From the IMG/VR virus record IMGVR_UViG_3300017991_000048, positions 248,001-312,000 of that record: 64,000 nucleotides of DNA; one strand, written 5' to 3'. Positions 1-62,758 of this stretch are shown in pieces. Each line of letters begins with the position of its first letter. Within the stretch, counting starts at the first letter, position 1. Below the pieces are notes generated by a model. It saw only the letters and a list, made by a program, of their open reading frames with translations. It was not told the DNA's origin and did no database searches. The position numbers were made by a program, and so were the translations under genes.

Positions 1-210
1 CGCTAGCCTGATGACACTTCCGAGAGAACTCTTTTGGAAAGGCTCTAAATCGACATCTCTCTTCGCGTCTTTAACCTCTTCAAGATAAGCTCCAATTGTA
101 CCCCAGGCTTCCTCACACCTCGCTTGGAGCGCTTGCACATGAGACCTCAGGACATCTACCGGCGGTCTGTCTCTACCTACCGCTTTTTTTGTTTTCCATT
201 TCTGATCCAT
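1..210 (-). CDS. Hypothetical protein with MDxxWK-type leader, truncated by window edge (not in ORF track)
   Basis: My translation: GGAGG SD, ATG at 210, MDQKWKTKKAVGRDRPPVDVLRSHVQALQARCEEAWG..., open to position 1. Confidence 0.7.
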   Translation of the reverse strand, partial: MDQKWKTKKAVGRDRPPVDVLRSHVQALQARCEEAWGTIGAYLEEVKDAKRDVDLEPFQKSSLGSVIRLA

Positions 211-287
211 AGCAATCTCCTCCGTCACTTCCCACAAACTATAGAAACTTTTTCCGAATCTCCCGTACAGCATCCGTTTTGGTCAAC

Positions 288-1712
288 TCACGCCCACGCC
301 GCGTAATCATCAGCTAGTTCCAACAAGAACCTGCCAGCTTCCCCTACTACACGCCCTGGTTTGACATTCAAAGCCGTCATTATCTCCCTGCCATCCAAGA
401 CAGGCTTTTTGGATACAGGCAAAGGCGACTCTTTGATCCGCTTGATCCGTTCCCTGAGTTGTTTAACATTGTGCTTTTGCGGGATAGATCCTAACTCATC
501 TGCCTCAGATACATCTAAAGTAGCATCTACGAGTTCGTCACCAAGATCCCGAATAAACTTTCTTATTGCCTTGTCCGTAACTTCGGGACCAAGATAGTGC
601 GGTCGCATGTGGTGACGGACCATACCCACAACTTTCTTGATAGTAGCAGCATCAAACTTGAGACGGTACAAGATAGCTTTTGCCATCTCCGCTCCCACCT
701 CTTCATGTCCGTGGAAACTTATAGCACCCTCGACAATCTCTTGTGTCTTAGGTTTACCAACATCATGTAATAAAGCTCCCAGTTGCCCTTCAATAGTCGG
801 CGGAGCATGACGAAGTACGTTCAGAGTATGTTTATAAACGTCACCCTCTGCGTGGTACTTCTTTCCCTGCTGGACGCCTTGCATGGCTTCGACTTCAGGT
901 AAGATATACTTTAGCAAGCCCATGAGCTTCATCAGCCTGATGGCACGGTCTAACTTACCGAGTTTCATTACCTTTTTCAGTTCATCCATAATGCGTTCAG
1001 CGGATACTATTTCAATACGAGATGCATTCCGCCGCACTGTCTTTATTACGGACTTAGGTATCTGCCAGTTATATTTACATTGAAAACGGACCAATCGAAT
1101 CATACGAAGGGGATCGTCATTAAGAATCTTGTCCAATGATACTCGCGGGTGCCCTCGTAAGATGCCCTTTTCAATGTCATGCTTACTGGTGCCCGTAAGA
1201 TCGACAACCTCTCCCGATGTCAGATCCTTAAGGAGCATGTTAACGGTAAAGTCCCGCCGTTCAACATCCTCTTCAAGCGTAGCTGGCATTACTTTACGCT
1301 GGCGTGAAGTAGGATCAGTAAACTTTTCCTTCATGGTATCGGCAAACTCTATTACCGCTCCCTTTGTACGATAGGTCTGCCCTTTATATTCTATATTATC
1401 TTTGAATGTAATTTGCCAAATAGGGTACTGCGCTCCCATATGATGGGGCCGGGTTATCTCTCTGGAAAACATATTGTGAAGATAAGTTGTTATCTTCTTG
1501 GCCCCACCCCGCATGTCCACCACGATATCTAAGTCTTTAGCTTCCAGACCTATATATTCGTCACGAATGTACCCTCCGACCGCCATGGCTTTACCGGCAA
1601 ATGGTGTCCCAGGCAAGACACGCTTTAGAAGACGTTCAACTTCTTTTTCCGATATTGAGGCTACGCGGCTGTTTAGGTATCGCTGAACAACTCTGTGGTT
1701 ACAAGTTTCCAA
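288..1712 (-). CDS. cca: Class II CCA-adding tRNA nucleotidyltransferase with HD domain
   Basis: Motifs VGGYIRD...KDLDIVV, RRDFTVN, DDPLRMIRLVRF, SAERI, H...LLHDVGKP, FHGHEEVGA. Extra N-terminal leader HRVVQRYLNSRVAS. The C-terminus may be frameshifted (see findings). Confidence 0.93.
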   Translation of the reverse strand: METCNHRVVQRYLNSRVASISEKEVERLLKRVLPGTPFAGKAMAVGGYIRDEYIGLEAKDLDIVVDMRGGAKKITTYLHNMFSREITRPHHMGAQYPIWQITFKDNIEYKGQTYRTKGAVIEFADTMKEKFTDPTSRQRKVMPATLEEDVERRDFTVNMLLKDLTSGEVVDLTGTSKHDIEKGILRGHPRVSLDKILNDDPLRMIRLVRFQCKYNWQIPKSVIKTVRRNASRIEIVSAERIMDELKKVMKLGKLDRAIRLMKLMGLLKYILPEVEAMQGVQQGKKYHAEGDVYKHTLNVLRHAPPTIEGQLGALLHDVGKPKTQEIVEGAISFHGHEEVGAEMAKAILYRLKFDAATIKKVVGMVRHHMRPHYLGPEVTDKAIRKFIRDLGDELVDATLDVSEADELGSIPQKHNVKQLRERIKRIKESPLPVSKKPVLDGREIMTALNVKPGRVVGEAGRFLLELADDYAAWA

Positions 1713-1887
1713 GTGCTTTTCCGAGAGCTTTATAAGCTTTCTTCAAGTCGTCAACCGCTTTTTCCATATCCTCTGAGGCTCTGAGAACCGGATTGGCCAA
1801 CGTTTGGTAATCTTGCATCTCGATCAGAAGATTTTTCATCTTACCAGCCTGCTTATCTTCAGATACTTTCCAGCGTTTGTTGTCCAT
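1699..1887 (-). CDS. Small helical protein with MDNKRWKVS leader
   Basis: ORF track 1699..1938; likely start is the ATG at 1887 after GAGGT SD. Confidence 0.65.
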   Translation of the reverse strand: MDNKRWKVSEDKQAGKMKNLLIEMQDYQTLANPVLRASEDMEKAVDDLKKAYKALGKALGNL

Positions 1888-1900
1888 ATCTACCTCAGTC

Positions 1901-2653
1901 TCAAAATGATGTCTTTTCCCAGTCGCGGCCCCAGTCACGTCCCGTAAACTCGCCTGTCTCTGCGCTCAACTCTACCTGTACTTCCCACTCATCACCTTCG
2001 TAAGTGGTTCCAGTCACCACTATGGACTGTTGTTTATCCCCTCTAACTCCATAATCATCGGTGCGGACATCCTCAAAATCTTCAGGCATTCCAATACTTT
2101 CTTCAACTTGTTTTGTCTCGCCTGAGAACTGATTCATCATTTCGACTCTAAGCTCTACTATGCCAGAATGAACATCAGCATCAACATCGTAAATATACCA
2201 AATGTGCCCAATATGACCGCCTCTTGGGATAAACTTGTGACGGATCTTACCGGTGGGCTTTCCAGTCTTATAAGTTTTTAGCCAACGTTGCACCGTTTCG
2301 TTGTATATGTCATTCACATCTTCTTGATCTCCGGGAATTTGTTTCCTGGCAGCGGTTCTGACGTCATCTTCCAGGTACTTGAAAACATCAATATAAGGCT
2401 GGACCTTTGAGGACATTACGACATCCCAAACCCCCATCGCAGCATACCTATCCCAAAAATCCCTCTGTTTGAGTTCTCTTTCGACCAAGTTTGCCGCTTT
2501 ACGAGGATCAAGCCCTTCAACATCATGTAATAAATCCATTGCTTGACTCATGCCCATAGGCGTGTTGTCGAAAGCGCCTGTTTTACCTAGAGCTTCTTCA
2601 AAAGCTGATCGGGGGTTGTTTATGGCGTTTTCAAAGGCTTTTCTGGGATTCAT
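1901..2653 (-). CDS. Hypothetical protein with tandem NPRKAFE/NPRSAFEEALGKTG leaders
   Basis: 250-aa ORF with SD; leader shared with many genes in the window. Confidence 0.75.
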   Translation of the reverse strand: MNPRKAFENAINNPRSAFEEALGKTGAFDNTPMGMSQAMDLLHDVEGLDPRKAANLVERELKQRDFWDRYAAMGVWDVVMSSKVQPYIDVFKYLEDDVRTAARKQIPGDQEDVNDIYNETVQRWLKTYKTGKPTGKIRHKFIPRGGHIGHIWYIYDVDADVHSGIVELRVEMMNQFSGETKQVEESIGMPEDFEDVRTDDYGVRGDKQQSIVVTGTTYEGDEWEVQVELSAETGEFTGRDWGRDWEKTSF

Positions 2654-2674: not shown

Positions 2675-3193
2675 TTATCTCAAATAGCTAGGGGCTAATT
2701 CCTTCGACAGCCAAATGCGAGCTTCTGTTAAAGCCTCTCTCGCCTTAGCCAAGCTCTGCCAAACACGAACTTTCAATAATGACTTTCGAGGGTGCGCCTC
2801 AGCAAAAACATCTCCAAGTTTACGTTCTATGGCAAGTAACTGTTTGCCTAACGCATTGACATCACGGTCAAAATCACGCTCAGAGGCAAAAAGTCTGCGC
2901 GGTCTCCATGACGGATCTTTCTCCATCATTTCCGAACCAACATCACGCTGAGCCCGATAAAGGTAAGCCTCTACCTCTTCCAGCTTGTCGAAAACTACAT
3001 TCGCGGCTCTGGATACCTCAGGCTTATACCTCTTGTTCTTGCCGCTTACCCTCTGCACCGCTTCCATAGCCTCTTGGATCTCATCTAACAACGCTTCCAG
3101 ATCATCTGCAAGCTTCTGGTTCTGGTCTGATCCCAGAGCAGTTTTCTGTAAGTATCGGGTAACAACGCTGTCCTTCATGTCAATCTCCAACAT
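2675..3193 (-). CDS. Hypothetical coiled-coil protein with SVVTRYLQKTA leader
   Basis: 172-aa ORF; probable start MKDSVV at 3178 after GGAG. Confidence 0.7.
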   Translation of the reverse strand: MLEIDMKDSVVTRYLQKTALGSDQNQKLADDLEALLDEIQEAMEAVQRVSGKNKRYKPEVSRAANVVFDKLEEVEAYLYRAQRDVGSEMMEKDPSWRPRRLFASERDFDRDVNALGKQLLAIERKLGDVFAEAHPRKSLLKVRVWQSLAKAREALTEARIWLSKELAPSYLR

Positions 3194-3197: not shown

Positions 3198-3554
3198 CTA
3201 CAACGGGAAAATCTCTCGGCTCATCTGGTCGGCGTACTCGTCAGGGTCGCCAAACTCTTTGACAAACTTTCTTTCCGCGTCCGCTAGTTGGCCAAAGGTC
3301 TTCATGGACACACGCTCCAACTCCTTCACAGCACCTTTGATCATCCTAATCATAGCCTCAGCATCCCTTCTAGCTGGACGGTCTAGGTAGGACGCGGCAT
3401 TATCATAGGGCCTTACTGTCCCCATAAGAGCATCTTCAATGTCATGTATATCGTTCCACACTTTATCGAGCACCCGCCCTACAGGGCCTTCTGTAAGGAT
3501 TGCTTTTCTCTTGATGGCACTCTCAAATGCTTTTCTGGGGTTGCTCATGATCAA
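3198..3554 (-). CDS. Hypothetical protein with NPRKAFESAIKRKA leader
   Basis: 118-aa ORF with GGAG SD. Confidence 0.7.
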   Translation of the reverse strand: MIMSNPRKAFESAIKRKAILTEGPVGRVLDKVWNDIHDIEDALMGTVRPYDNAASYLDRPARRDAEAMIRMIKGAVKELERVSMKTFGQLADAERKFVKEFGDPDEYADQMSREIFPL

Positions 3555-3651: not shown

Positions 3652-3966
3652 TCACTCTTCTACCGGAGGGGGTGTTCCTGGTTTATGTCCCTTATCGATA
3701 ACAAAGTGCTGTGGCTTCCACCGGATCTTGTACTTGCGAGCGAGACTTTTGGCTGCTTTCGCAGCCTCTTCAAAATCACTTTTCCACACGCTCACAAAGG
3801 AGGATTTCTCAATGACTTTGCCGCCTTGAGAAAGCCCCACATCCGCTCGCCAGCCGTTGTTCTCCGCAGCCGTTACGGATACCATAAGGGTGACTTTGCC
3901 AGTCCCTCCAATGAAGTTGTATTGCCACCTATCTTCGGCTGCTACTTTCCATCGTAATGCGTCCAT
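3652..3966 (-). CDS. Hypothetical protein with MDALRWKVAA leader
   Basis: 104-aa ORF directly downstream of the sheath gene. Confidence 0.7.
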   Translation of the reverse strand: MDALRWKVAAEDRWQYNFIGGTGKVTLMVSVTAAENNGWRADVGLSQGGKVIEKSSFVSVWKSDFEEAAKAAKSLARKYKIRWKPQHFVIDKGHKPGTPPPVEE

Positions 3967-15683: not shown

Positions 15684-15905
15684 TTAATAGATTTTGACAC
15701 CGTTACCCATTACAATTAGACGGTAATCGGACCCAAACGCCTTTTTTAACTCCCACTCCAGAGCTTCCACTTCACGCAAGACCTCATCGAACTCTTCATC
15801 CAATAGAGGCTTTTGAGGGGGATGTGTACGCTCTCTGACCTTATTAATTCTTCGGAGAGTGGGCACATATGCTGTCTTGGACGTGCGTTTGTATGAATAA
15901 TCCAT
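15684..15905 (-). CDS. Small protein with YSYKRTSKTA leader
   Basis: 73 aa, AAGGAG SD. Confidence 0.65.
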   Translation of the reverse strand: MDYSYKRTSKTAYVPTLRRINKVRERTHPPQKPLLDEEFDEVLREVEALEWELKKAFGSDYRLIVMGNGVKIY

Positions 15906-38112: not shown

Positions 38113-45556
<7,444 letters not shown>

Positions 45557-46864: not shown

Positions 46865-48484
46865 CTATTTGAACTTATCCTTGTTCTTCTGATGTTCCTC
46901 TCTCCACTTCTTGGCATCTTCAGGACTCATATTTTTGGTAGGATCAGCAGGTTTCCCCTCCTCGAATCGAGACTCTACTTCTTTCTCAGCTTCTTTTTCG
47001 TCTGAGGCGTAGTTCCTCATACCCATGGGCAGCGATGCCATATAGACTTCCTCATCCATAACTTCACTTTCAAAACGCCGCCAAGCATCTTCGGCTTTTT
47101 TCCCCACCATAAAAGTTTTGTCTCTAGGCCAATACAGCACCAAATCGCCACGCTTGAATGGGGTTCCATCGGATGCTTGACCTGGATACCGAGCGTGTAT
47201 CCAACGCGGATCGTATGAAGCAGCTTCTTTGTCTGAAGCTCTATACTCCCGGCGACCTTCCCCTTCATCGATCAAAGCTTTGACCCGCTCCGCTTCACGG
47301 GAAGATTTCTTGACCTTATAACCTAACAACTCTAAGTCTCTGGCCAAATCTCTTATCGTGTTAGTGACCTTCCAGTAAGAACTGTGAATCTCTTTGGCTC
47401 TGTCAATGATATTGTCAGGCATCCCCGCAAGCGGACCCATATCCGCCGCGAATCCCGTCAAAGCGTCTTCCAACGATTGATCTATGGTGCTGTTCTCACC
47501 CACACAAACAAAGAAGTTTTCAGCCGCTTGGATCAAAGCGGCCTGAAGATCCTCTGTGGACACCCCTTCGCCGTGCGGACGATTTCGAATCCTAAGAGGT
47601 TTAAGATTAGCCGCTGTCTTTGTCTCTGGTTCTTCTTGAGCCGCTGTCCTGTTCTCGTTCAAATAATCAGGATTGACCAAGAAGCTCTCGTTCGTAACCT
47701 TCCCGCGTGTCAACATTTGATGCTTTTCAGCTACAATGGTTCCACGATCCTTATAAACGGCTCCCATTGTCCGTTTGGTATGCATATAATGAGGACGCGG
47801 CCACCTAGCGTTAGCCAAAGCTTCGTTGAACTCCGCCTCTGTCGCGCTCTGCAACGCTTCAAACAACGCCGTGCGAACATCCATAGCCTCTGCCAATACA
47901 TTCCGAAGTTGTGAGGCTAATGCCATCCGACTCGGACGCTCTTCATCGGTTTTCAAAAGATTCGCAGCCAGACCACGCAGAGTGTCGGCAACCTGATCCC
48001 CTGTAGCGGTCTTTGACTGCCCTTCTAACTGAGAGATCAAGGCAGCCAACTTCTCTATATCTGCCTGTCCCGTGGACTCCACCTCTGTTGCTAAACGTTC
48101 AAGTTCGGCCACAGCCTCTGGAATATTCATAGCTATCTCTCCCTTAGATTGCTTAACCCGTCGAATCCGAATGTCTTTAAGGGCGTTCTCAAGTTCCTCG
48201 ACCTTCTCAGGATTCAAGGTGTCCTTGATTTCCTCATAATCTAACTTGGCCGCACCCAAGGCTGCGGCACTGAGAGCCCTGTCCAACCCTAATAAAGTCT
48301 CTGGAACCCCGTAGATCAGATGAGCAGCGACCTCAAAAAAATGGTCTTTATGCTCAGACTTGTTGATGAGTTTAACTCCCTCATCTACATACTTCCGAAG
48401 CTGAGCGCACTTCAGCCTAGCGTCTCCCAATTCCTCAAGGAGGAAGACCGATATGTTACTGGCTTCTTTGTTATGTTCTTCCAC
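46865..48484 (-). CDS. 539-aa multi-module hypothetical protein rich in K/R-x-A motifs
   Basis: KEAS, KTAT, RTAA, KTAA, KEAAS; RPSRMALASQL shared with 52664..53176. Confidence 0.75.
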   Translation of the reverse strand: MEEHNKEASNISVFLLEELGDARLKCAQLRKYVDEGVKLINKSEHKDHFFEVAAHLIYGVPETLLGLDRALSAAALGAAKLDYEEIKDTLNPEKVEELENALKDIRIRRVKQSKGEIAMNIPEAVAELERLATEVESTGQADIEKLAALISQLEGQSKTATGDQVADTLRGLAANLLKTDEERPSRMALASQLRNVLAEAMDVRTALFEALQSATEAEFNEALANARWPRPHYMHTKRTMGAVYKDRGTIVAEKHQMLTRGKVTNESFLVNPDYLNENRTAAQEEPETKTAANLKPLRIRNRPHGEGVSTEDLQAALIQAAENFFVCVGENSTIDQSLEDALTGFAADMGPLAGMPDNIIDRAKEIHSSYWKVTNTIRDLARDLELLGYKVKKSSREAERVKALIDEGEGRREYRASDKEAASYDPRWIHARYPGQASDGTPFKRGDLVLYWPRDKTFMVGKKAEDAWRRFESEVMDEEVYMASLPMGMRNYASDEKEAEKEVESRFEEGKPADPTKNMSPEDAKKWREEHQKNKDKFK

Positions 48485-49645: not shown

Positions 49646-49721
49646 TATTAATCTCCATGTTCATTAGGGCATAGACCGCCCCTTATGAAAAACCATAAAT
49701 AAAGTATTAAGCCCAATTACT

Positions 49722-50363: not shown

Positions 50364-50379
50364 ATGGGTGGTTACACCG

Positions 50380-50922
50380 TTATGGCAACGGTAAGGGCTT
50401 GGTGCCTTTAAACCCTGTACCCGGTAAAGAGCCTGCAATGGCATCTTGCTCTTCCTTGGACCAACTCCCAGCGCCTGGACGCTTACCCGCGTACACGGTA
50501 AAGAGTGCAAACAACCCGTTCCGGTTTGCCACTACTTTGGTATTACCCGAAGCAGATAACAGACCTTTTTGGTCCATTTGGGCCTTAAGTTCACGCCAAA
50601 CTCCTCCAAGAACTCTCTCTGCCTTCCGTAAACTACCAATAGTAGTACTAAAAGCCAAGCCAGCGTTCGGATAATCACCAACGTCATCAATTAGAACCCA
50701 TCCTGTTATACCCTTCGTACCAAGCGAAGCGTAAGGACCATCTAAAGAAGCAGTTTTCCAGTGGTTATGACGATTTTCCTCATCGCTGTATCCGGTGACT
50801 ATTGCTTGTTTTTCTGTCTTGCCCTCATCCTTGTCCTCGGATTTTTCCTTCATCTTCTTTTGCTGTTCCAAGAACTCAGGGGGAACCTTCTTCTTTGCGG
50901 CTTTCCAACGATTCTGATCCAT
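50380..50922 (-). CDS. Protein with MDQNRWKAA leader, KKKVPPEFLEQQKKMKEK module and internal NHWKTA
   Basis: 180-aa ORF, AAGGAG SD. Confidence 0.75.
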   Translation of the reverse strand: MDQNRWKAAKKKVPPEFLEQQKKMKEKSEDKDEGKTEKQAIVTGYSDEENRHNHWKTASLDGPYASLGTKGITGWVLIDDVGDYPNAGLAFSTTIGSLRKAERVLGGVWRELKAQMDQKGLLSASGNTKVVANRNGLFALFTVYAGKRPGAGSWSKEEQDAIAGSLPGTGFKGTKPLPLP

Positions 50923-50932: not shown

Positions 50933-51541
50933 TTAGCGGTCTACGCCAATATCTGAAATAAGCTTGTAAATCAAATCTTTCTGGCCGTTAGTGAACTTCC
51001 ACCTGACGTTCACGTTCTTGTCAGCCCAATCTTTTGGACTGCTTTTCTTTTCTTCTGACATGGCAAGCCAGTCAGCACACATCTCTGCAATATCCAGGTC
51101 TAACATCTTGGTAGCGTCCACCATTTCAGACGGCGGCTTGTCCCTGTCGTCGCGGTTTATCAAATCCACTTTCTTACTACAATGGAACTCAGGGTGGTGG
51201 CGGTTGTTCTTGACGTGGTGTTGCGTTGCCTCATTCATCTTGTCTTCGATACCATCAGGGGCATCGAACTTCTTACCATCGTCCTGGCACTTGTACTGCC
51301 ATGTGATCCAGATGTAAGGATCGATTTCAGGCTTCTTGAGCTTACTTTGGTCGTGGTCCTTGCCCTGTTCAACCAAACCCTTGAACTTCTTGGGGTCGTA
51401 CTTCTCAATCTTCTGACAATACTTCTGCACCCGCTCGATATGTTCACTGGTTCTCTTGTCAAACCAGTCCTTCATCTCCTGGGTAGGTTCGGTATCGGCA
51501 CGTAAGAATCGCGCCACTACGCGTCGAGCTGAAACGGTCAT
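50933..51541 (-). CDS. HD-superfamily hydrolase (DUF5662-like) with RRVVARFLRA leader
   Basis: HIERVQ, HDQSK, HHVKNNRHHPEFH, EMCADW. Confidence 0.75.
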   Translation of the reverse strand: MTVSARRVVARFLRADTEPTQEMKDWFDKRTSEHIERVQKYCQKIEKYDPKKFKGLVEQGKDHDQSKLKKPEIDPYIWITWQYKCQDDGKKFDAPDGIEDKMNEATQHHVKNNRHHPEFHCSKKVDLINRDDRDKPPSEMVDATKMLDLDIAEMCADWLAMSEEKKSSPKDWADKNVNVRWKFTNGQKDLIYKLISDIGVDR

Positions 51542-51547: not shown

Positions 51548-52012
51548 CTAATACTTTGGAGCTAACTCAGCCATCCGACGTATGAACCTGCGGGTAGCTG
51601 ATCTCCATGGTGCCAAATCCCTTACCTCTAACTCGTCACCAACATCATAGTCTAATAGCTCCTCCACTTCGTGTATGATCTCTCGCTCGACGTGATCCAC
51701 CAAACGATCTACATGACCAGAAGGTATGGTGCCTGCTGTCTTTGCGGCCAACGATCGTGGTCCATAACCTTTCTGAGGGCCGAGACGGTTAATTTGATTC
51801 TTTAGGATGCCCATCCACCTTATCACTTCATCAGCGGAAGTAAGCACCTCTTCAGGTTCGAACCTTGAGGCACCAAGCTCTTCATCTATGTACTTCAAAA
51901 GCTTTTTGACCTCACGAAGCTTTTGTTGAGCTTTCATATATTCGGCTCTCGTCACAGGGCTGCGCGAATAGGTGCCCACGGGAACAGCGGTCTTCCAACG
52001 GTTATGATCCAT
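51548..52012 (-). CDS. Two-module protein with MDHNRWKTA leader
   Basis: 154 aa; internal AKTAG. Confidence 0.7.
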   Translation of the reverse strand: MDHNRWKTAVPVGTYSRSPVTRAEYMKAQQKLREVKKLLKYIDEELGASRFEPEEVLTSADEVIRWMGILKNQINRLGPQKGYGPRSLAAKTAGTIPSGHVDRLVDHVEREIIHEVEELLDYDVGDELEVRDLAPWRSATRRFIRRMAELAPKY

Positions 52013-52021: not shown

Positions 52022-52651
52022 CTAATGTCCGTAGCCCCAGGCAGTCTGGTACTTGGGTTTGCCGTCCCACTTATAGGCGTGGCTGTAGCTTGTAAGCCTT
52101 ACAGAGTGGCCCGGTGACACCCGCTTGCGTTTGGGCGGTCCAGTGTATCTGCCCGGAACAGCCACCACATAATCCGCGCCTTCTGCTCTCCTGGCAACCT
52201 TCTGAGCTATCTCGCGGATCTCAATCTGTTTTGCTCCCGCGAGTCTCGTTACCTCATAAAAATCTACGTTGGTCTGGTCGTAGCCCCATGCAGAGTAAAG
52301 AATGTCTCCAACATTAAACTCGTGCTTGAACTCCCGCCGTTCCTTCTTTCTTCTTTCCTTTTCCTCCAAGGTTCTTCTGCGTCCGTCAGCCGAGTCTTCA
52401 ATATGTTTCTCGCGTTGGGCTTCGCTGCGGAAAGAATAGTGGTATAGAGGCTTCTGTGACTTACCCTGAAAAGCTATGGCAACATACTTGGGTCTGCCGT
52501 TCCGGTCCTCACCGTCATACTGATAAACCACCTGATCAGTGCCTCTGGGAACGTAAGGTTTCTGATCTCTGACCTCTTTGGGCAGATAGAAATCACGGGG
52601 CATTACCACCCGTGGACGGTAAGCTGTTTTGCGGTGGTCGTAAGAATACAT
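52022..52651 (-). CDS. Protein with YSYDHRKTA leader; WGYDQTNVDFY domain
   Basis: C-domain paralogous to 54493..54828. Confidence 0.75.
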   Translation of the reverse strand: MYSYDHRKTAYRPRVVMPRDFYLPKEVRDQKPYVPRGTDQVVYQYDGEDRNGRPKYVAIAFQGKSQKPLYHYSFRSEAQREKHIEDSADGRRRTLEEKERRKKERREFKHEFNVGDILYSAWGYDQTNVDFYEVTRLAGAKQIEIREIAQKVARRAEGADYVVAVPGRYTGPPKRKRVSPGHSVRLTSYSHAYKWDGKPKYQTAWGYGH

Positions 52652-53190: not shown

Positions 53191-53754
53191 TTACTCATAA
53201 TATGCCAAGGCGTTATGATCCCCGGCGGCGTCAGTGATCAGTCCTTTTGCATCAGCTAAAACTTTAATCTCTAGTTCAGCAGACTCAATAGCATCCTCTA
53301 TCTGAGTAATTAACTCATTGGCGAGTTCATATCTTTCATCCTCAGACCTAGTTTTGTCCAAAGCATTGAAGTACGCCTTTGCCGCTTTTTCCAAGGGTTG
53401 ATTTTCATCTAAAAACTGCCTTCGCGCTATCGACCTAGCGATGTTATAAGCTTTGCGACGGACAGCAATATTGGGTTCTTCGGCAGCAGTTTTTTTGCTC
53501 TTCTGCTTTGACAAGAACTGAGGTGGTATTTTGCCTTTGCCTTTGCTGTCGCCGCCCTTCTTCTCATCTTTGTCGCTGTTGCCCTTGGCCTTTTCCTTCA
53601 TCTTCTTCTGCTGTTCCAAGAACTCAGGCGGAACCTTCTTCTTTGCGTATCGTTTGACAACACGTTCTGCTAATTTTGACATTAGAATTTTTCTCCAGCT
53701 ATTTTCTATGCAGTCCGATCTCCAGATGGGTCCACTCATCAACGTAGTCAACAT
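53191..53754 (-). CDS. Protein with ERVVKRYA leader and KKKVPPEFLEQQKKMKEK module
   Basis: Probable start ATG 53682 (MSKLAERVV) after GGAG. Confidence 0.72.
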   Translation of the reverse strand: MLTTLMSGPIWRSDCIENSWRKILMSKLAERVVKRYAKKKVPPEFLEQQKKMKEKAKGNSDKDEKKGGDSKGKGKIPPQFLSKQKSKKTAAEEPNIAVRRKAYNIARSIARRQFLDENQPLEKAAKAYFNALDKTRSEDERYELANELITQIEDAIESAELEIKVLADAKGLITDAAGDHNALAYYE

Positions 53755-54463
53755 CTACCCTAACAGTATCGCGGCCAAATTCCTTAATGACAGCCTGAGC
53801 CAGCGTATTCGCTTCTCTCAGATCCTCTCGACCAGGAGCATCATCTCCCATGTCACCGTGCTCTCTGGTGGAGTAAAACAAGTGCTTGGGACTCTCATCC
53901 TCCAAATCCATCCAGGTACGCTGTTTCTTGATAAAATCTTTGACATCCTTGATGGAGACTTCGCCCCCACGAGTGCCTTTCTTGGGGCCACCTAAAGCGA
54001 AAAGCAGAGCTTCAGGGGTAATCTTTGCCAAGACCTTTTTGATATCCCGGACCGTGGGCACTCTCTCAGACTTAACGGTATGCGCTGGATAAGCACCGCC
54101 AGTGGGTGGCACCCACAACTGCACCTCCCAAGTTGGCTCTTTTAGAATCCATCTTCCAGGAGTAACGTAATCCCCTCTTACTGCACGATGGTTCATCCGT
54201 CCAGAAATGGACATGATCTTATGCCCGTCAACTTCAATATCCTGCTCAAAACCCACATGGGAAGTGGGAATCCCATATATATTTTCTGGGGGATAGGCGA
54301 CCTTAAAGCCCTCTGGGAGCATAGTGAGTAAGATCTTACCTGCTCGCCTCGCGGTGCCTTTGGCGGTTTTGAACTCGCGCCCGTATAGCTCTATAGCGTC
54401 CCGGACCATCGACTCTTTTTTTGGTCTAGGGGTGGCAAAGCGTCTGTCGTAGCTGTAGTTCAT
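53699..54463 (-). CDS. Protein with NYSYDRRFA leader
   Basis: 254-aa ORF. Confidence 0.72.
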   Translation of the reverse strand: MNYSYDRRFATPRPKKESMVRDAIELYGREFKTAKGTARRAGKILLTMLPEGFKVAYPPENIYGIPTSHVGFEQDIEVDGHKIMSISGRMNHRAVRGDYVTPGRWILKEPTWEVQLWVPPTGGAYPAHTVKSERVPTVRDIKKVLAKITPEALLFALGGPKKGTRGGEVSIKDVKDFIKKQRTWMDLEDESPKHLFYSTREHGDMGDDAPGREDLREANTLAQAVIKEFGRDTVRVDVDYVDEWTHLEIGLHRK

Positions 54464-54492: not shown

Positions 54493-54828
54493 TCAGTGGC
54501 CGTATAGCTTGCTGGTCTGGAACTTTGGTCTTCTGTCCCACTTTCGGGCGTAAACATTAGAGTCTATTTTGACAGTGCCATCCGGGGTAACCCGCTTACG
54601 CATGGGCTTGGAATTGCGAGCAAATCGGCCAATCATGGGTCTGATGAAAAACCCGTTCTTTGTCTGCCTGACGGTCTTTTGCGCGAGCGCCTGGATCTCG
54701 ACTTGGGGTTCTCCAAGGGTTCTGAGGATCTGATAGAAATCAACGTTGGAATCCTCATAGCCCCAGGACGCGAAGAGGACGTCTCCGGGGATGAGATTGT
54801 GAGCTATTTTCCATCGGAGGTGGTCCAC
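54493..54828 (-). CDS. Protein with MDHLRWKIA leader; WGYEDSNVDFY domain
   Basis: Paralogue of the C-domain of 52022..52651. Confidence 0.72.
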   Translation of the reverse strand: MDHLRWKIAHNLIPGDVLFASWGYEDSNVDFYQILRTLGEPQVEIQALAQKTVRQTKNGFFIRPMIGRFARNSKPMRKRVTPDGTVKIDSNVYARKWDRRPKFQTSKLYGH

Positions 54829-57833: not shown

Positions 57834-58712
57834 CTAAACACGAGTGACAACAATACGGGTCAATCCGCGAGGATTGAAGGCACCGATACCCAGGTTCTCA
57901 AAACAACTGAAACCAATTGTCCGAGCCTTTGGATCGTCAGCCGACAGAACAGTGATCTCGGTACGAACCGGGATACGACCGAACTGCTCAGGCTCACAGC
58001 AAACATACGCGAAGCCTGACGGAACCAGCCTGGATGTGATGATCTGAGCACCCCAAAGAACAGCCTGTAGGCCGGTCTTGAGCAGGGTAGCCTGACTCTC
58101 GATATCCAGAATGTCACGTCCGAACTTACGGATGTCAGCGTAATCCGTTGCATTCATGTAGATCCGCGCAACCCGAAGGTCATGCCTCTCTATTTCTGCA
58201 AAGGCGTCAGCCAGTACTGCCGGTGAAATCGGAGCTACCACCGGTACATCGGGATTGGTCTGCCCAGGCAGCGTGTCGAAACCTGAAACAGCAATGCTGT
58301 CCAGAATCGCGAATACACGCTCATCCTCAGCCGCCTGAATCTGAGCCTTGGCCAAATCCTGGGCACGTTCGATCAGATCGAAACGACGCTCCTTGATCTG
58401 GGTCAGGGGGATTTCAGGGTTCGAGGCAATCTCAAACAAGGGGAAGATCACGCGACGTGGCTTCTGAATGGCAAGAATATTCTCACCCTCTTCGCCCACG
58501 ACAAATGCGGTCACGTCCGGGTCCTTGTCGTAGATAGGCAGAGCACCATCGGGAAGCTGCTCGACCAGGAAGGTCTTACGACCGACTGCCGAGTAGTCAC
58601 GACGAAGACGGAGCGGCTGAATCATGGAAGCGGCGAGCTTCGCACGACCGGCTGCGGTCTTGATGTACTCAGAAATAACCTGCTGCTTGACTTGATTTGA
58701 TACTTGTCCCAT
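57834..58712 (-). CDS. Major capsid protein (HK97-like fold)
   Basis: 292 aa after protease, scaffold and decoration genes, followed by a strong terminator; FEIASNPEI...IERAQDLAKAQIQAAEDERVF backbone-helix pattern; N-terminal YIKTAA. Confidence 0.8.
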   Translation of the reverse strand: MGQVSNQVKQQVISEYIKTAAGRAKLAASMIQPLRLRRDYSAVGRKTFLVEQLPDGALPIYDKDPDVTAFVVGEEGENILAIQKPRRVIFPLFEIASNPEIPLTQIKERRFDLIERAQDLAKAQIQAAEDERVFAILDSIAVSGFDTLPGQTNPDVPVVAPISPAVLADAFAEIERHDLRVARIYMNATDYADIRKFGRDILDIESQATLLKTGLQAVLWGAQIITSRLVPSGFAYVCCEPEQFGRIPVRTEITVLSADDPKARTIGFSCFENLGIGAFNPRGLTRIVVTRV

Positions 58713-58720: not shown

Positions 58721-59359
58721 CTAGACCCTCATGTCAAGCACGAGCAGCGAACTGTTAGCATCTGGAGCAACTTTGACCACGCCGATCAGGGTCACGAACT
58801 CAATCGCATTTTGACCCGGAACATTGTACTCATAAGCGTCCGCGAGAACGTTGGTGACGTAGCCGTTGGCTGAACACCACAGCTTGTCCCCCGTTGCGTA
58901 TGTGATGGGAGTGCCAGCACTCTTGCCCAGTAGGATCTTTGTCTCGTAAATATCGAGTCCTACACAAGAGCCGCTGCCGCAAACATAGGGTCCGCGTCCC
59001 GAAGCCACACCCGGCGTATTCTCAAAGGGGTTGCCCAGGCTATCATTCAGAAAGATACCCAGAGGCAGATAACCAGGAGCATATGCAGCACCCGGCTGGA
59101 TAGGTCCACCGATATAGTTGTTGCCTATGTCGGGGCGAGTGAACGCAATCGAGGCACCAAGAACACCTTTCTTGGTAATACCTGAGAGCGTTGTAGAAAC
59201 GGTCGCGGCAGCGGTGACAATTGCGGGATTATCTTGCGTGAACGCATCCGGTGTCAGAAGACCCACAGAGTTGCGGGTCACGACATGGAGGAGTTGCACT
59301 CGTCCTGATGTCTCCCGAAAATCACCCGAACTTTGACCGCCGATAGCGTATGAAGTCAT
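58721..59359 (-). CDS. Putative capsid decoration/cement protein
   Basis: 212 aa, G/A/T-rich beta protein directly upstream of the major capsid gene; PLGIF...SG......G..V.L..YET. Confidence 0.55.
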   Translation of the reverse strand: MTSYAIGGQSSGDFRETSGRVQLLHVVTRNSVGLLTPDAFTQDNPAIVTAAATVSTTLSGITKKGVLGASIAFTRPDIGNNYIGGPIQPGAAYAPGYLPLGIFLNDSLGNPFENTPGVASGRGPYVCGSGSCVGLDIYETKILLGKSAGTPITYATGDKLWCSANGYVTNVLADAYEYNVPGQNAIEFVTLIGVVKVAPDANSSLLVLDMRV

Positions 59360-59466: not shown

Positions 59467-60666
59467 CTACTTGATGCCGAAAACGTCGCGGACGTCAGGA
59501 GCCGACTTCCAAAGACTGGACAGTTGATCAATGCCGTCCTGACCAGCCGATGAAGAAGCGCCACCCAACTTGGACACGCCCTCAGAAGGACGGGTTCCAA
59601 CAGTCCGAGTCGAAGCTGTGCGGGTCGAAGCCTGCTTTTGCTGCTTCTGTTGCTGTTGGCCCTTCTCCTGATCCTGGCCTTCCTTCTCTTCGTCCTTGTC
59701 CTGCTGATCCTCAGCAAACAACTGACGCAGAACTGCATCCTCAGGACCAAGGTCGTTATTGGAGATGTCCATCTGAGGCGGCTCCATCTGGATATCCGTC
59801 TCAGCGGTCTGGCAACGGCCAAGCACGTCATCAAGATCCTCATCCATGACCACCTGCTCATCCATCACGTCCATAACCTGCTGACCCTGCTGTTGCTGCA
59901 ACGCCTGATCAATCATCTCCTGGACTTGCTGACCAACCTGCTGGATCTGCTCATCCTGAATCTGCTGTTGGGCCTGCTGTTGCTGGTCCTGTTGCTCCTG
60001 ATCCTGTTGGACCTGTTGCTGAACCTGATCCTGCTGAACCTGCTGTTGCTGCTGCTGTTGCTGGTCCTGCTGAGCCTGCTGGATCATCTCCTGAACCTGC
60101 TGTTGGGCAGCGCCATAGTTGCCGGTCTGAATCTGCTGAACTACCTGCTCAGCCATCGCCGTCATATCCACAGCCTGCTTTTCCTGGCCCTCATCCTTGT
60201 CCTCATCAGCATCTTCATCCTCACCGGCAAGACGCTTATGAGTGTCAATCAACTCCTGATCCGGAAGATGCATCAGAGCGACAGCCTGATCTTCGATCAT
60301 GTCCTCTGTCACAGATGCATGTTTGCCCTGATCAAGCAGCCTCTTGGCAACATCGATACAAAGATCCGCCTTCTTGAGCAGAATCTCTTTCGATGCTGTC
60401 TTTTCAGGATGGTTGAAAGTGTCACCCCTCATGTCAGGCATCCCGATCTCATTACGCCGGGTTTCTCCGCCTGAGTACTCAGACTCCCATGTGTTAGGTG
60501 AATGCACATCTTCAGCAAATGCCGAAGGGTCACCTATAACATAGGCGTCCGCAGGGGGTTGCGGATGGTCTTGGTTCATAGTGTAAGGATCTGCCACCTT
60601 CTTTAGAGCAGCAGCCTTTTCCATAACCTCTTCTCGATTCCAGGTAGAACGCTCACGCATTGGCAT
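59467..60666 (-). CDS. Capsid scaffold protein (Q/E/D-rich coiled coil)
   Basis: Located between protease and capsid genes; long poly-Q/QD stretches; many K/R-x-A motifs (KVA, KTAS, KHAS, KQA, KQASTRTAS). Confidence 0.7.
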   Translation of the reverse strand: MPMRERSTWNREEVMEKAAALKKVADPYTMNQDHPQPPADAYVIGDPSAFAEDVHSPNTWESEYSGGETRRNEIGMPDMRGDTFNHPEKTASKEILLKKADLCIDVAKRLLDQGKHASVTEDMIEDQAVALMHLPDQELIDTHKRLAGEDEDADEDKDEGQEKQAVDMTAMAEQVVQQIQTGNYGAAQQQVQEMIQQAQQDQQQQQQQQVQQDQVQQQVQQDQEQQDQQQQAQQQIQDEQIQQVGQQVQEMIDQALQQQQGQQVMDVMDEQVVMDEDLDDVLGRCQTAETDIQMEPPQMDISNNDLGPEDAVLRQLFAEDQQDKDEEKEGQDQEKGQQQQKQQKQASTRTASTRTVGTRPSEGVSKLGGASSSAGQDGIDQLSSLWKSAPDVRDVFGIK

Positions 60667-60710: not shown

Positions 60711-62219
60711 TTACGACCGTCCCAAGCTAAATAATCGGCCTTTTTCTAACAAACTGGCAGTTTCACTCCCTGTTAGCTTCCGACCAAGAACTTGACGACA
60801 AGCCGCCAAATATGACTCTACATCTTCATATGGGCCTGTTCCTCCTACATCAAGAACAGTCCTATAAACTCTTGTTTCACCAGCCATAAGTGCTTTCTTA
60901 TTCATTAAATCAAGCATTCGGGATACGGCCAAAATGTTCCGACCTGTAAATCCTGCCTTTTTAACTAATGGCCAACCACCACGCTTGTGTAAGATCAAGC
61001 CGTGAAAAACTTTCCTAGCATCTGCTTTTCCAATAAAAGAAACTACTAATTTAGCAATCCGCTGCCACTCAGGGTGCTTCATGGCGGATCGAATTAAAGT
61101 CTCATTTTGCTGATTAGGGTCTATAGCCCGGATGCTATCTACTTCTTTCTGACCGATTTCTTTTCTAATGTTTTCAATGGCTTGGTTACGCAGAGCATCT
61201 GTTAGATCAGTGATAGCTTTCTGAACCGGGTTCTCTTCTTCAGGTTCTGCTGGAGCCGTTTCTTCGCCTTCATCCTCAGTTTCAAACTGTTGTTCAGGCT
61301 CCTGTCCCTGTCCCTGGCTTTGCTCTTGCTGGCCCCATCCCTGGAAAGCCGCTCTGGACATCATGTTAGGATCAGCCACTGGAGCCGGTTGGCCCAAAGC
61401 TACTCGCATCTTACCTTCAAGCCCTTGAAGCTCTTCTGCCGTAAGAATATTTCTCAGAACAGCGCCCTTGAAAGCTGGATTGGCAACCCAAGATGCCTCG
61501 ATAAACTTTACGGAGTCAGGATCGGTATAATGGCCGCATAACTCCGCAATAATGCGTTCAACGCCAAGGTCATCCCTGAACTTGCTTCCTTTAAAGAACC
61601 GGACGCACTGACAGAGTTGTGCTTCATCCTGTGCTACATTTCCACACTTTGTACACGTTGTGGTAGCTGTAGAGCATCCCATGGATAGGGTGCCGAGCTT
61701 CCCGGTCTTGATAGCCCTAATCAGGGGCGCATGTTTAAGATCATTCGCAATCAGAATGTCAATGTATATGGATTCCCCGACATCCCTGGCAGCGGCGTCG
61801 ATAATCCGACCCTTAGAAAGCTCCGGAATCTGAACATGCTCAACGTAAGATTGCGCTCCGACAAAGGTCTTGAAACTTCCCAACAGGAGCCTTCGCTCGA
61901 AAGCATCGTTATTATTGTTAACGAACTGAGCGGTCTTGGGCGTAATGTAATAATCGCTATACTTACGATCAACCTCGAAACCCTCTACAAAATGCCGACC
62001 CATGGGAGCAGAAGCTTCGTCCACGTCCACGGAAGCCACAATCGTTGCGTGGCTGAGCATATATTTGGACGGGTCATACTCCTGAAGGATGATCCGGGCG
62101 GTCTTCTTCTGAAAATCCGGGGCAGGACTCAAGGCCCCACGACGCACAGCATCCCATTCCGCGAATTCAATTCCCGGTTTTTGTAAGGTTGCTTTTGCGT
62201 ATTTAAGAAATGCCATCAA
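60711..62219 (-). CDS. Putative prohead (maturation) protease, assemblin/HK97-like
   Basis: Candidate catalytic His (SYVEHVQ) and Ser (GTLSMGC), E.S.VANPAF strand, CxxC insert, position before the scaffold. Confidence 0.7.
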   Translation of the reverse strand: MMAFLKYAKATLQKPGIEFAEWDAVRRGALSPAPDFQKKTARIILQEYDPSKYMLSHATIVASVDVDEASAPMGRHFVEGFEVDRKYSDYYITPKTAQFVNNNNDAFERRLLLGSFKTFVGAQSYVEHVQIPELSKGRIIDAAARDVGESIYIDILIANDLKHAPLIRAIKTGKLGTLSMGCSTATTTCTKCGNVAQDEAQLCQCVRFFKGSKFRDDLGVERIIAELCGHYTDPDSVKFIEASWVANPAFKGAVLRNILTAEELQGLEGKMRVALGQPAPVADPNMMSRAAFQGWGQQEQSQGQGQEPEQQFETEDEGEETAPAEPEEENPVQKAITDLTDALRNQAIENIRKEIGQKEVDSIRAIDPNQQNETLIRSAMKHPEWQRIAKLVVSFIGKADARKVFHGLILHKRGGWPLVKKAGFTGRNILAVSRMLDLMNKKALMAGETRVYRTVLDVGGTGPYEDVESYLAACRQVLGRKLTGSETASLLEKGRLFSLGRS

Positions 62220-62225
62220 TCAGTC

Positions 62226-62471
62226 TCAGCGTTCAGCTTTCCTTATTAAATCAAGCATCTCATCAGTGCTTTCATAAAGAGCTTCCAGCTTTCCTTGTGT
62301 GTACGCCATTTGCCTCTTGTAGTCGCTTTTTGAAATGACCCCTGGTGTTCTAAGACGATCCTCTTGTCCCTCAATCTGTCTCTTCAAGACCTTAGAGTTC
62401 CACTCAAGTTTTCTTTTTATTTCTTCCAAAACAAGATGTTGATGAGCAGCGTAGCGGCGGTCATAAGTCAT
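62226..62471 (-). CDS. Small protein with MTYDRRYAA leader
   Basis: 81-aa ORF, AGGTG SD. Confidence 0.7.
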   Translation of the reverse strand: MTYDRRYAAHQHLVLEEIKRKLEWNSKVLKRQIEGQEDRLRTPGVISKSDYKRQMAYTQGKLEALYESTDEMLDLIRKAER

Positions 62472-62479
62472 AACATCAC

Positions 62480-62758
62480 CTAAAACTTCATACTCAACGT
62501 GCGTCCGATTTGATCTAATATCTTTGCCGTCTCTTTCGGGTCGTGGAAGCTCTTTATTCTGCGGACATTCTTAATCTCTATCCAGACAGCACGGTCGTTC
62601 TGAGACGGGCTAAACTCAATATCAAAGGCTCCCATACTGGCCTTACCCACCTGACGCCTTGGATCATACTTCACATTACGCCAACGTTTTTTGAGTTCAG
62701 CCGCAAACGCCGCACCCTCATCGCCCTGCTCAAAGCCGTAGCGTCGATCGTAGGTCAT
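62480..62758 (-). CDS. Small protein with MTYDRRYG leader
   Basis: 92-aa ORF. Confidence 0.7.
   Translation of the reverse strand: MTYDRRYGFEQGDEGAAFAAELKKRWRNVKYDPRRQVGKASMGAFDIEFSPSQNDRAVWIEIKNVRRIKSFHDPKETAKILDQIGRTLSMKF

Follow-up and report, generated by a model that had tools for sequence, protein, structure and literature searches.

Swappable leader peptides of four classes among the head and tail genes of an uncultured huge bacteriophage

Short leader peptides of four sequence classes (A–D) were found on 25 of the ~69 genes, about a third of the head-and-tail block, in a 64,000-nucleotide stretch (the window) of the 398 kb genome of an uncultured huge bacteriophage akin to Bacillus phage G and Tunturiibacter phage Tunturi_5. 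These tags are swappable, are under selection at the peptide level, stand outside the folded body of the proteins that carry them and have a rare tripeptide in common with head-module proteins. No description of a leader system of this type was found in the literature searched, and within that scope such tags are previously undescribed in this phage lineage. Our best explanation, to which we give about an even chance, is that all four classes are propeptides with a link to head assembly, built as portable modules and usually closed by K-x-A (typically K-T-A). The leaders probably mark proteins for the head-assembly and protease machinery, and each is probably a short, helical docking element.

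Every gene in the window is carried on the minus strand. As in an earlier note on this DNA, genes are named by the low end of the ORF, i.e. the stop-codon end (Table 1). That note had described the leader genes as scattered through the structural operon, and they were indeed seen around the portal-protease-capsid module and interleaved with the portal, protease, capsid, sheath and tail genes on the one strand. The ORF at 63503–63964 proved to be the end of an 899-aa gene, which leaves the window; the portal gene (66227–68032) lies just past it. The head maturation protease had no match in PDB or Pfam, and its catalytic part gave a poor AlphaFold model, both of which weigh against the head-assembly explanation.

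Table 1. Leader peptides, related units and head-module genes, by position in the window.
Feature	Gene	Positions	Strand	Carrier or remarks
Class D variant MDQKWKTKKA	1-210	181..210	-	70-aa protein
Class C leader ..NHRVVQRYLNSRVA	288	1659..1712	-	CCA-adding enzyme 288-1712, TTG start
Class D leader MDNKRWKVSEDKQA	1699	1846..1887	-	62-aa protein
Class A leader in tandem, MNPRKAFENAIN-NPRSAFEEALGKTG	1901	2576..2653	-	N-terminus, 250-aa protein 1901-2653
Class C leader ..KDSVVTRYLQKTA	2675	3137..3193	-	172-aa protein
Class A leader MSNPRKAFESAIKRKA	3198	3501..3548	-	N-terminus, 116-aa protein
Class D leader MDALRWKVA	3652	3940..3966	-	104-aa protein
Class B leader MDYSYKRTSKTA	15684	15870..15905	-	73-aa protein
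Class B leader MIEPYTYDRRGVSLRTA	15916	17317..17367	-	483-aa protein
Class A leader MGNPRKAFEEALAKAA	19774	19900..19947	-	N-terminus, 57-aa protein
Class A internal unit, KTA-MTNPRKAFEEALE-KTA	19956	20370..20426	-	Separates the two halves of the protein; KTA either side
Class A leader MTNPRKAFEKALSKVS	19956	20892..20939	-	N-terminus, 327-aa protein 19956-20939
Class A internal units (three)	20949	22080..22895	-	aa 366-385, 498-516 and 617-637 of mosaic 1013-aa protein 20949-23990
Class C leader ..NDRVVDRYQAKTG	23994	24402..24452	-	152-aa protein
Class A leader MNPRKAFEQALGAQKVA	25204	25426..25476	-	N-terminus, 90-aa protein
Class A leader MNPRKAFEEAINKQA	25491	25830..25874	-	N-terminus, 127-aa protein
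Class A internal unit MAANPRKAFEETLKKQA	26268	26622..26672	-	Directly after the DUF5661 domain, adjoining it
Class A variant MDPRRAYEEALQKEG	26268	26850..26894	-	N-terminus, 208-aa DUF5661 protein
D-like unit ..KPADPTKNMSPEDAKKWR......KDKFK	46865	46868..46972	-	Extreme C-terminus, conserved 539-aa protein 46865-48484
Class D leader MDQNRWKAA	50380	50896..50922	-	180-aa protein
Class C leader MTVSARRVVARFLRA	50933	51497..51541	-	DUF5662 protein, 202 aa
Class D leader MDHNRWKTA	51548	51986..52012	-	154-aa protein
Class B leader MYSYDHRKTA	52022	52622..52651	-	209-aa protein 52022-52651
Class C leader MSKLAERVVKRYAKKK	53191	53635..53682	-	163-aa protein; next segment KKVPPEFLEQQKK common to 50380-50922
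Class B leader MNYSYDRRFAT	53699	54431..54463	-	254-aa protein
Class D leader (V)DHLRWKIA	54493	54802..54828	-	111-aa protein 54493-54828, GTG start
Major capsid protein, HK97 type		57834..58712	-	KTA at aa 18-20, N-arm
212-aa protein		58721..59359	-	Position of phage G capsid decoration protein; assigned from position alone
399-aa Glu/Gln/Lys-rich protein		59467..60666	-	Scaffold position, flanked by the protease and capsid genes; K[TQV]A at four sites
Head maturation protease		60711..62219	-	Protease aa ~36-278, then C-terminal helical domain
Class B leader MTYDRRYAA	62226	62445..62471	-	81-aa protein, gene directly upstream of protease gene
Class B leader MTYDRRYG	62480	62735..62758	-	92-aa protein
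899-aa protein, C-terminal end		63503..64000	-	Whole gene 63503-66202; five KTA sites

The earlier claim of four leader classes on about 25 proteins was confirmed, with counts far above chance. Relative to 100 Markov surrogates of the window searched in six frames, there were 11 matches for class A ([ND]PR.A[FY]E.A[LI], typically NPRKAFEEAL; 0.00 expected), 4 for class B (Y[ST]YDRR; 0.14 expected), 6 for class C (RVVxR[YF]; 0.41 expected) and 5 for class D (MDxxRWK; 0.37 expected), and all 11 strict class A matches lay in the coding frame. Of 24 matches, 21 began in the first 15 residues, a stretch that accounts for 5% of the proteome. An unbiased k-mer scan of the window and 79 related loci ranked RWK.A, Y.YDR, NPRKA and RVV.R highest among the N-terminal k-mers that unrelated bodies share.

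The units are nevertheless not strictly N-terminal, as they had been taken to be, since some stand in tandem, others at junctions inside a protein and one at a C-terminus. Besides the N-termini of seven genes, class A copies were located inside 19956 (aa 175), 26268 (aa 78) and 20949 (aa 503 and aa 621; the copy at aa 369 is the variant NPRVAFEE). Units are found where modules meet: KTA or KQA borders the internal class A units, directly preceding two of the three in 20949, and the D-like unit of 46865 is found at internal domain junctions in relatives, with K-x-A next. Tandem, internal and C-terminal copies misfit a purely N-terminal signal and in this respect count against the head-assembly explanation, as does the presence of the NPRKAFE core within apparent ParB-like and integrase-like proteins.

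The leaders are portable: the same orthologous body bears B, C or D in different genomes; one has a B or D leader in the window and C in relatives. DUF5662 bodies that are 58–73% identical begin with different N-termini (MSWYKKA-, MKIYKIA-, C-like and others), and homologues of the CCA-adding enzyme (Pfam PolyA_pol and HD) have C-like, B or other extensions ahead of the conserved body start. In the AlphaFold model of this enzyme the leader stands outside the fold, with pLDDT values of 51–60 for residues 1–20 and 97–98 for the body from residue 21. The downstream domains had been described as unrelated. This holds for most bodies, which form separate clusters, but not for 52022 (B), the C-terminal domain of which is homologous to the body of 54493 (D; 40% identity, E 2e-28), nor for 50380 (D) and 53191 (C), which have a post-leader segment in common. 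Portable tags, not remnants of paralogy, are what the exchanged leaders and the AlphaFold model support. That the tagged bodies include the CCA-adding enzyme and a DUF5662 protein, homologues of the latter being located elsewhere among metabolic and replication genes, is an observation against the head-assembly explanation.

The statement that leaders end at K/R-x-A was borne out in part: about 11 of 24 have a strict [KR][TVIQ]A within 20 aa, and in most of the others the motif relaxes to K-x-[AGS]. K[TVIQ]A was enriched threefold over the first 30 aa (16 observed, 5.4 expected). Using protein categories that were set after data inspection, KTA was enriched 7–11-fold across leader-bearing and head-module proteins. 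The leader-bearing proteins held 14 sites against 2.0 expected (p 2.5e-8), a signal that lies partly within the leaders, with 10 of the 14 sites past aa 30; the capsid N-arm, the protease, the 399-aa protein between them and the 899-aa protein upstream of the protease held 12 against 1.1 expected (p 3.7e-9). KTA was not enriched in tail, fibre and other proteins (3 observed, 4.4 expected), nor was any of five permuted tripeptides tested alongside. The protease has KKTA followed by R at aa 38–41, and when the window phage is aligned with LR745208.1, Tunturi_5 and phage G, KTA or TQA falls at one position ahead of the protease domain in all four of these distant relatives; in three of the four the capsid N-arm has K[TS]A followed by AGR. 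The KTA signature supports a link to head maturation that is specific as far as sequence goes, and so does the placement of leader genes around the portal-protease-capsid module. An N-terminal extension runs through the whole CCA family, and at its junction stands [ST]-x-[AS] instead of K-x-A, which counts against the head-assembly explanation.

Under the head-assembly explanation, the tag would bind a component of the assembling prohead, either the scaffold/protease core or the inner capsid surface, and through this binding the tagged protein would be built into the head. The protease would cut tagged proteins at or near K-x-A; its further substrates would be the N-arm of the capsid protein, its own chain, the proteins in scaffold position and multi-module polyproteins. 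Prohead binding, cleavage, retention in the virion and injection are what we infer for the tagged proteins. The earlier note had proposed a code for loading proteins into the head; the portable tags and the KTA link to head maturation support it in part, while its simple reading is strained by the internal and C-terminal units, by the relative LR745208.1, by tagged enzymes with homologues among metabolic genes and by the junction motif of the CCA family.

LR745208.1 has a capsid protein 84% identical to that of the window phage, yet class A–D leaders were looked for in it and none was found, which weighs against the head-assembly explanation. Only seven of its genes, dispersed over 485 kb, have a different leader, which is 27 aa long and looks like two helices with a Pro-containing turn between them. 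In favour of that explanation, no gene of this genome has as many KTA sites as the one immediately upstream of the protease, and K[TE]A is densest in the head-module bins.

The leaders could instead be short linear docking motifs for a hub other than the capsid, such as a chaperone of the phage or its host, an unfoldase or translocase of the AAA+ type, or a factory for replication or translation, with K-x-A as part of the binding motif and not a cleavage site. This is possible, though we consider it unlikely. Tandem and internal copies suggest avidity-type binding, the leaders resemble amphipathic helices, homologues of the CCA-adding enzyme and the DUF5662 protein sit among metabolic genes in other phages, and a survey of jumbo phages offers the speculation that AAA+ proteins of phages (BCS1, ClpX/ClpA) act as protein translocases in virion assembly (PMC7824862). 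Such a hub leaves unexplained the enrichment of KTA in the capsid N-arm, protease and scaffold-position proteins but not in tail proteins, and the coincidence of units with module junctions; neither ClpP nor ClpX of the phage G type could be detected in LR745208.1 or in as much of the window genome as is sequenced. ClpX-type unfoldases recognise short motifs at the N-terminus in which basic and hydrophobic residues abound, and phage G encodes both ClpP and ClpX, so the leaders might also be N-terminal degrons or timing signals for a host or phage protease in the cytoplasm. We regard this as quite improbable: ClpXP is not conserved in the close relative LR745208.1, the leader genes are co-oriented with late morphogenesis genes, and neither internal domain junctions nor a signature common to capsid and scaffold-position proteins would be expected of degrons.

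It is improbable that the leaders have no common function and are N-terminal helices inherited in fast-diverging families of small paralogous genes, which duplication and recombination would have spread through the genome. Some carriers are related past the leader, class A carriers are weakly similar to one another and all phage-type CCA family members have an N-terminal extension. However, most bodies form separate clusters, different leaders occur on the same body, class A is present on further bodies in independent metagenome contigs, and the cores stay nearly invariant as peptides while codons and bodies diverge, and are conserved across a clade with proteases only 44–74% identical. Conservation of the nucleic acid itself, as an element of regulation or translation initiation or as a hotspot of recombination, would agree with motifs at gene starts that adjoin ribosome-binding sites (a Shine-Dalgarno sequence is present at most leader ATGs), but is scarcely credible. 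Synonymous positions in the leader codons are free to vary, with all four Pro, five Arg and five Leu codons in use, so conservation acts at the peptide level and the idea is effectively refuted; the internal and C-terminal copies and the unconserved upstream DNA also speak against it. The Arg-Arg or Arg-rich cores of classes B and C look superficially like twin-arginine motifs, but export or membrane targeting (Sec, Tat or an amphipathic membrane anchor) is very improbable, given that no leader is followed by a hydrophobic h-region, charged sequence follows the core and class A is strongly charged.

Among known systems, the coat-binding helix-turn-helix of P22 scaffolding protein and the cargo-loading peptides of encapsulins are short helices that dock arbitrary cargo inside an HK97-fold shell, and are usually C-terminal, single-class and not removed. 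The helical look of the LR745208.1 leader recalls these; no homology between them and the leaders described here was detected, and shell binding by the latter is a candidate role only. In staphylococcal phage 80alpha the N-terminal extensions of capsid and scaffold have a common short peptide, which the host protease Prp cuts after an Ala; this single motif, copied from ribosomal protein L27, has only two substrates and is unrelated to the leader motif here. Both the T4 capsid targeting sequence (CTS) and the SPN3US motif end at Glu. The terminal motif here is K-x-A, unlike the A-X-E of SPN3US (PMC5694885, PMC10052503).

Like the T4 CTS, which is removed by the gp21 prohead protease, the leaders are short N-terminal peptides on otherwise unrelated proteins (PMC5694885, PMC9026906), with a terminal motif also present in major head proteins, genes among those for morphogenesis and, close by, a gene for a head maturation protease. 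As precedent for the head-assembly explanation, T4 CTSs have 10–20 residues and the short propeptides of SPN3US 20–24 (PMC5694885, PMC10052503). Where T4 has one sequence class, the leaders here fall into four or more, spread over 25 genes of a 64 kb stretch, with tandem, internal and C-terminal units; the lineage is G-like, and the small HK97-type capsid protein lacks a delta domain. The phiKZ-like SPN3US is likewise a giant phage in which many head proteins are processed (PMC10052503). Two substrates of its protease gp245 have N-terminal propeptides of 20–24 aa and long propeptides are cut at several sites; most propeptides are 111–254 aa, with no shared portable peptide, and ~80% of head proteins are uncleaved (PMC10052503). 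They have no sequence relationship to the leaders here. Phage P1 Dar antirestriction cargo and ‘polyvalent proteins’ illustrate enzymes and counter-defence proteins delivered from the capsid (PMC9024508, PMC7824862), and the mosaic 1013-aa protein is similar in resembling a multi-module, processable head protein. No common short leader code has been described for them, and domains typical of polyvalent proteins were looked for in the leader carriers and none was found. Lastly, the 172-aa class C protein may truly start at its second ATG, at 3178, which bears a Shine-Dalgarno sequence.

The source contig, IMGVR_UViG_3300017991_000048, is 398,071 bp in length, and every long ORF of the window is carried on the minus strand. 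The major capsid protein was 48% identical to that of Tunturiibacter phage Tunturi_5 (309 kb) and 40% identical to that of Bacillus phage G (498 kb), which by this comparison are its nearest cultured relatives. IMG/VR held 582 relatives of the capsid protein, of which the best 80 were at least 90% identical and came from contigs of up to 529 kb. Based on homologues of capsid, protease, sheath, tail and portal proteins (see table), the window represents the block of head and tail morphogenesis genes of an uncultured, G-like huge phage. Capsid-gene relatives were also found in genome bins (MAGs) of mutually inconsistent taxa (Actinomycetota, Legionellales, Methylobacter, Anaerolineaceae, Nitrospirae and even Altiarchaeales); these contigs are probably mis-binned phage, and therefore no host was assigned from them.

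Features of the morphogenesis block, with leader genes of a complete relative (window numbering unless stated)
Feature	Position	Strand	Match or remark
Tail sheath	4001-8287	-	
Homologue of annotated tail terminator	8837-10033	-	
Actin-like protein, 356 aa, among tail genes	10033-11103	-	Pfam Volactin, E 6.7e-72
Homologue of Tunturi_5 annotated 'minor tail protein', 877 aa	12664-15297	-	Interrupted by intein: Hint/intein splicing domains and LAGLIDADG region, aa ~304-730
Block of methyl-, sulfo- and probably glycosyl-transferase genes	~31573-36484		
Paralogous pair following the 2267-aa protein	36503-37525 and 37525-38112		
2267-aa protein	38112-44915	-	Mostly collagen-like G-x-T/G-x-x repeats
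71-aa ORF, probably a gene remnant in gene-poor gap 49646-50379	49722-49937	-	C-terminal part of uracil-DNA glycosylase domain only, PF03167 E 4e-4, below gathering score
Major capsid protein, HK97-fold	57834-58712	-	phrog_2522 E 1e-49; profile match to major head protein family
Head maturation protease	60711-62219	-	phrog_18299 E 2.5e-9
899-aa protein, running off window end	63503-66202	-	ORF listed as 63503-63964 is its C-terminal end; also L004 2511-5210
Portal, just outside window	66227-68032		phrog_16240 E 2e-31
LR745208.1 leader genes (comparison loci L090-L099)	~20.3, 226.1, 275.6, 351.6, 351.8, 390.9 and 398.6 kb of LR745208.1		

An earlier note had described four classes of short leader peptide in this region (A, NPRKAFEEAL; B, Y[ST]YDRR; C, RVVxR[YF]; D, MDxxRWK), and a six-frame regular-expression scan recovered all four where that note had placed them. 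Leaders are carried by 25 of the ~69 window genes (A 8, B 6, C 5, D 6). Only two matches lay outside minus-strand coding frames (a plus-strand B-like one and a C-like one in a non-coding frame), and between 4 and 11 were observed per class vs 0 to 0.4 expected from Markov surrogates and residue shuffles. The first 15 residues of each protein, together 5% of the proteome, hold the starts of 21 of the 24 regex matches, and similar 8-mers between different proteins were four times commoner at residues 2-21 than in internal segments. An unbiased count of N-terminal k-mers by distinct body clusters, performed on the window and 79 related loci, returned RWK.A, Y.YDR, NPRKA and RVV.R at the top. Searches of the leaders and small carriers against Pfam, PHROGs and NCBIfam matched only DUF5661, DUF5662, CCA-enzyme domains and phrog_37844.

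Comparison of the bodies behind the leaders indicates that the latter behave as portable tags, swappable between proteins. The downstream domains had been described as unrelated; the bodies do fall into separate clusters, but two pairs proved to be related. The C-terminal domain of g52022 (class B; genes are named by the low, stop-codon end of the ORF) shares 40% identity with the body of g54493 (class D), and g50380 (D) and g53191 (C) have a common segment directly behind their differing leaders. Relatives have a C or C-like leader on their orthologues of the g52022/g54493 body, and tandem B, C and A leaders were also found in them. The DUF5662 body, which follows a C leader in the window, has 291 homologues; among the 120 listed (58-73% identical), the first 8-20 residues took the forms M[SNT]WYK.A, M[KR]I[YIV][KR].A or MK.F.EW, with one C-like. 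In distant phages, DUF5662 homologues lie among metabolic and replication genes. Several small proteins of two distant AT-rich, DUF5662-bearing loci (L086, 19394-20396; L088, 7169-8883) begin with MKI.[LM]SK.QWE.[IL].., a recurrence suggesting that shared leaders may extend beyond the G-like clade.

The same arrangement was seen in 120 phage-type CCA-adding enzymes, in which a variable extension of 15-25 aa leads into a conserved body, with the catalytic GGxVRD motif ~25 residues past the start of that body. The extension is C-like in the closest relatives of the window, B in two sequences and of other amphipathic forms elsewhere. In the AlphaFold model of the window enzyme, pLDDT was 97-98 from residue 21 onward and 51-60 over residues 1-20, the leader (to ...SRVA) merely extending helix 1 into solvent.

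The units are not strictly N-terminal, as they also occur internally, in tandem and at a C-terminus. Internal class A units were located in 19956-20939, in 26268-26894 and three times in a mosaic 1013-aa protein (20949-23990). The 539-aa conserved protein g46865 (46865-48484) ends exactly in a D-like unit (..KPADPT.NMSPEDAKKW......KDKFK), which in relatives is positioned between the domains of longer fused ORFs and is followed by K-x-A. These internal and C-terminal placements suggest that the units mark module boundaries. A Shine-Dalgarno-like sequence precedes a Met codon in three internal A units (Met codons at 20417, 22490 and 26672), so that nested translation products are possible from them. 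The mosaic protein (minus strand) also contains a second repeat, ..EARKKYL.EHPKADP..HTVKK.., at aa ~88-113, 198-222 and 758-785, found once in the relative L038.

Leaders had been proposed to end at K/R-x-A; K-x-A does close most units, with the CCA family, whose junction is [ST]-x-[AS], departing from this. K[TVIQ]A was enriched threefold within the first 30 residues, and KTA or KQA flanks internal units. Leader carriers contained 14 KTA sites, against the 2.0 that their composition predicts. Those proteins of the head module (capsid, protease, the 399-aa protein between them and the 899-aa protein upstream of the protease) that lack a class A-D leader contained 12 (1.1 expected), and the remaining proteins (tail, fibre, transferase and others, 12,084 residues in all) contained 3 (4.4 expected). 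Enrichment was 7-11-fold and limited to leader carriers and head-module proteins, a pattern not shared by any of the five tripeptides obtained by permuting K, T and A. Sites include the capsid N-arm (aa 18-20), the portal near its N-terminus (aa ~51), five positions in the 899-aa protein and one ~40 residues into the protease, ahead of the protease domain. This last site is conserved by position: LR745208.1, a complete relative of 485 kb, has TQA there, and the window phage, Tunturi_5 and phage G have KTA. The gene richest in KTA sites in the whole of LR745208.1 is that immediately upstream of the protease. Such a distribution is what a recognition motif of the prohead protease would produce, and from it we infer that cleavage may occur at these sites. 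The family alignment of KTA-rich proteins merged unrelated clusters through low complexity and was used only to place g63503 as the C-terminal part of the 899-aa protein. Homologues of the latter are 900-1300 aa in many relatives, with a GGS...RV[VL].R[WF] unit near the N-terminus.

Both homology (39% identity to Tunturi_5 gp331, 2e-47; 30% to phage G gp19, 3e-17) and position (portal ... protease ... capsid) are those of a prohead protease. The protein had no match in Pfam or among PDB sequences, and its AlphaFold model stayed under pLDDT 50 throughout the catalytic part; it has invariant His and Ser residues. Across the 80 contigs of the clade, capsid identity is at least 90%, whereas the adjacent proteases are only 44-74% identical to that of the window, and the four leader cores persist across the contigs with these proteases. 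In the relatives L005-L083, protease genes sit ~2-4 kb upstream of the capsid gene, and several have protease ORFs of 920-1425 aa, which suggests insertions or inteins.

Classes A-D were absent from the complete LR745208.1 genome, though its capsid is 84% identical; there, seven scattered and otherwise unrelated genes start with a 27-aa leader, MTTLRSKLIRLAH..P.LRP.LLPLLKEA, that ends in K-x-A. In phage G (L085, 3.3-44.1 kb), at least 5, and loosely ~10, of 60 head-region proteins begin with MKRLIKKA or ..SRLKKTA, which is weaker evidence given the Lys-rich genome. A scan of metagenomes for class A, in which leaders were counted only where Met stood directly upstream, identified 15 on 11 further contigs, with K-x-A after most. 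The same scan returned ~24 unrelated matches with internal NPRKAFE, in apparently ParB-like and integrase-like proteins and one other family; these were over half of all matches, and thus the 9-mer alone is not diagnostic. Loci L114, L117, L119, L120, L126, L137 and L145 have NPRKAFE in a ParB-like-looking family (..FLRPNPRNPRKAFEEADL..L..SI..) and in integrase-like proteins; we take the resemblance to class A in these to be coincidental.

Several explanations can be considered for the recurrence of these peptides. Most leader start codons are preceded by a Shine-Dalgarno sequence. Conservation in DNA or RNA was rejected, since codons of the conserved residues vary freely at synonymous sites and DNA upstream lacks conservation, which indicates that selection acts on the peptide. 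A Sec or Tat export signal was rejected because no hydrophobic h-region follows the basic or twin-arginine part, the residues after the cores being polar or charged. Tags read by a phage-encoded ClpXP were likewise rejected, as no homologue was found in LR745208.1 or the window. Loading into the head, as put forward in the earlier note, is the best-supported candidate mechanism, and we consider its chances to be even; the four-class leaders on which that proposal was built were confirmed and extended. Injection of the tagged cargo is speculative.

Capsid targeting sequences of T4 and propeptides of SPN3US/phiKZ have already been described (PMC5694885, PMC10052503, PMC9026906). The leaders resemble the T4 type in that a short N-terminal peptide, here of four classes, is common to otherwise unrelated proteins, and differ from it in the additional placements of the window units. 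Cleavage in the phiKZ/SPN3US type follows A-X-E (or S/A/G-X-E), whereas window leaders end in K-x-A with no conserved x-E after the cores. Encapsulin-type cargo-loading peptides, which are terminal and bind the inner face of an HK97-fold shell, would be comparable in principle only. A candidate novelty is the multi-class, modular and lineage-specific form of such a propeptide or targeting sequence of the prohead. Neither N-terminal leaders common to several proteins nor propeptide motifs are mentioned in the phage G multi-omics study (PMC12484599), the phage G tail study (PMC8570332) or a survey covering 224 jumbo phages (PMC7824862). Purified phage G particles were reported to contain many non-structural enzymes (PMC12484599), compatible with extensive cargo but also with contamination.

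A broader scheme, which we offer tentatively and regard as rather unlikely in full, is that G-like megaphages use a combinatorial, fast-evolving address code of classes, tandems and K-x-A modules to load dozens of arbitrary proteins, including tRNA-repair and other enzymes, into the prohead as protease-processed cargo delivered with the DNA. Classes might then correspond to docking sites, copy numbers or release behaviour, and each sublineage would have its own code: A-D in the window phage, LRSKLIRLAH... in LR745208.1 and possibly the MKRLIKKA type in phage G.

Should the tags be propeptides for head targeting, they would account for the way in which very large phages pack numerous accessory proteins into their capsids, and sequence alone would suffice to predict cargo in hundreds of huge-phage genomes from uncultured phages. 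Several orthogonal short tags into an HK97-type shell would, if real, also serve in the engineering of phage or capsid nanocontainers. A tag on the CCA-adding enzyme would point to tRNA repair arriving as soon as infection begins. Even with a target other than the capsid, interchangeable and lineage-specific leaders on one third of the region's genes would constitute an unrecognised layer of phage proteome organisation. The idea is directly testable in the cultured relatives phage G and Tunturi_5.

Two paralogous pairs in the window are leaderless: 25876-26259 and 28063-28449 encode proteins of 127 and 128 aa (45% identity, E 5e-36), and 8415-8840 and 45565-46005 encode small zinc-ribbon-like proteins that are 25% identical.
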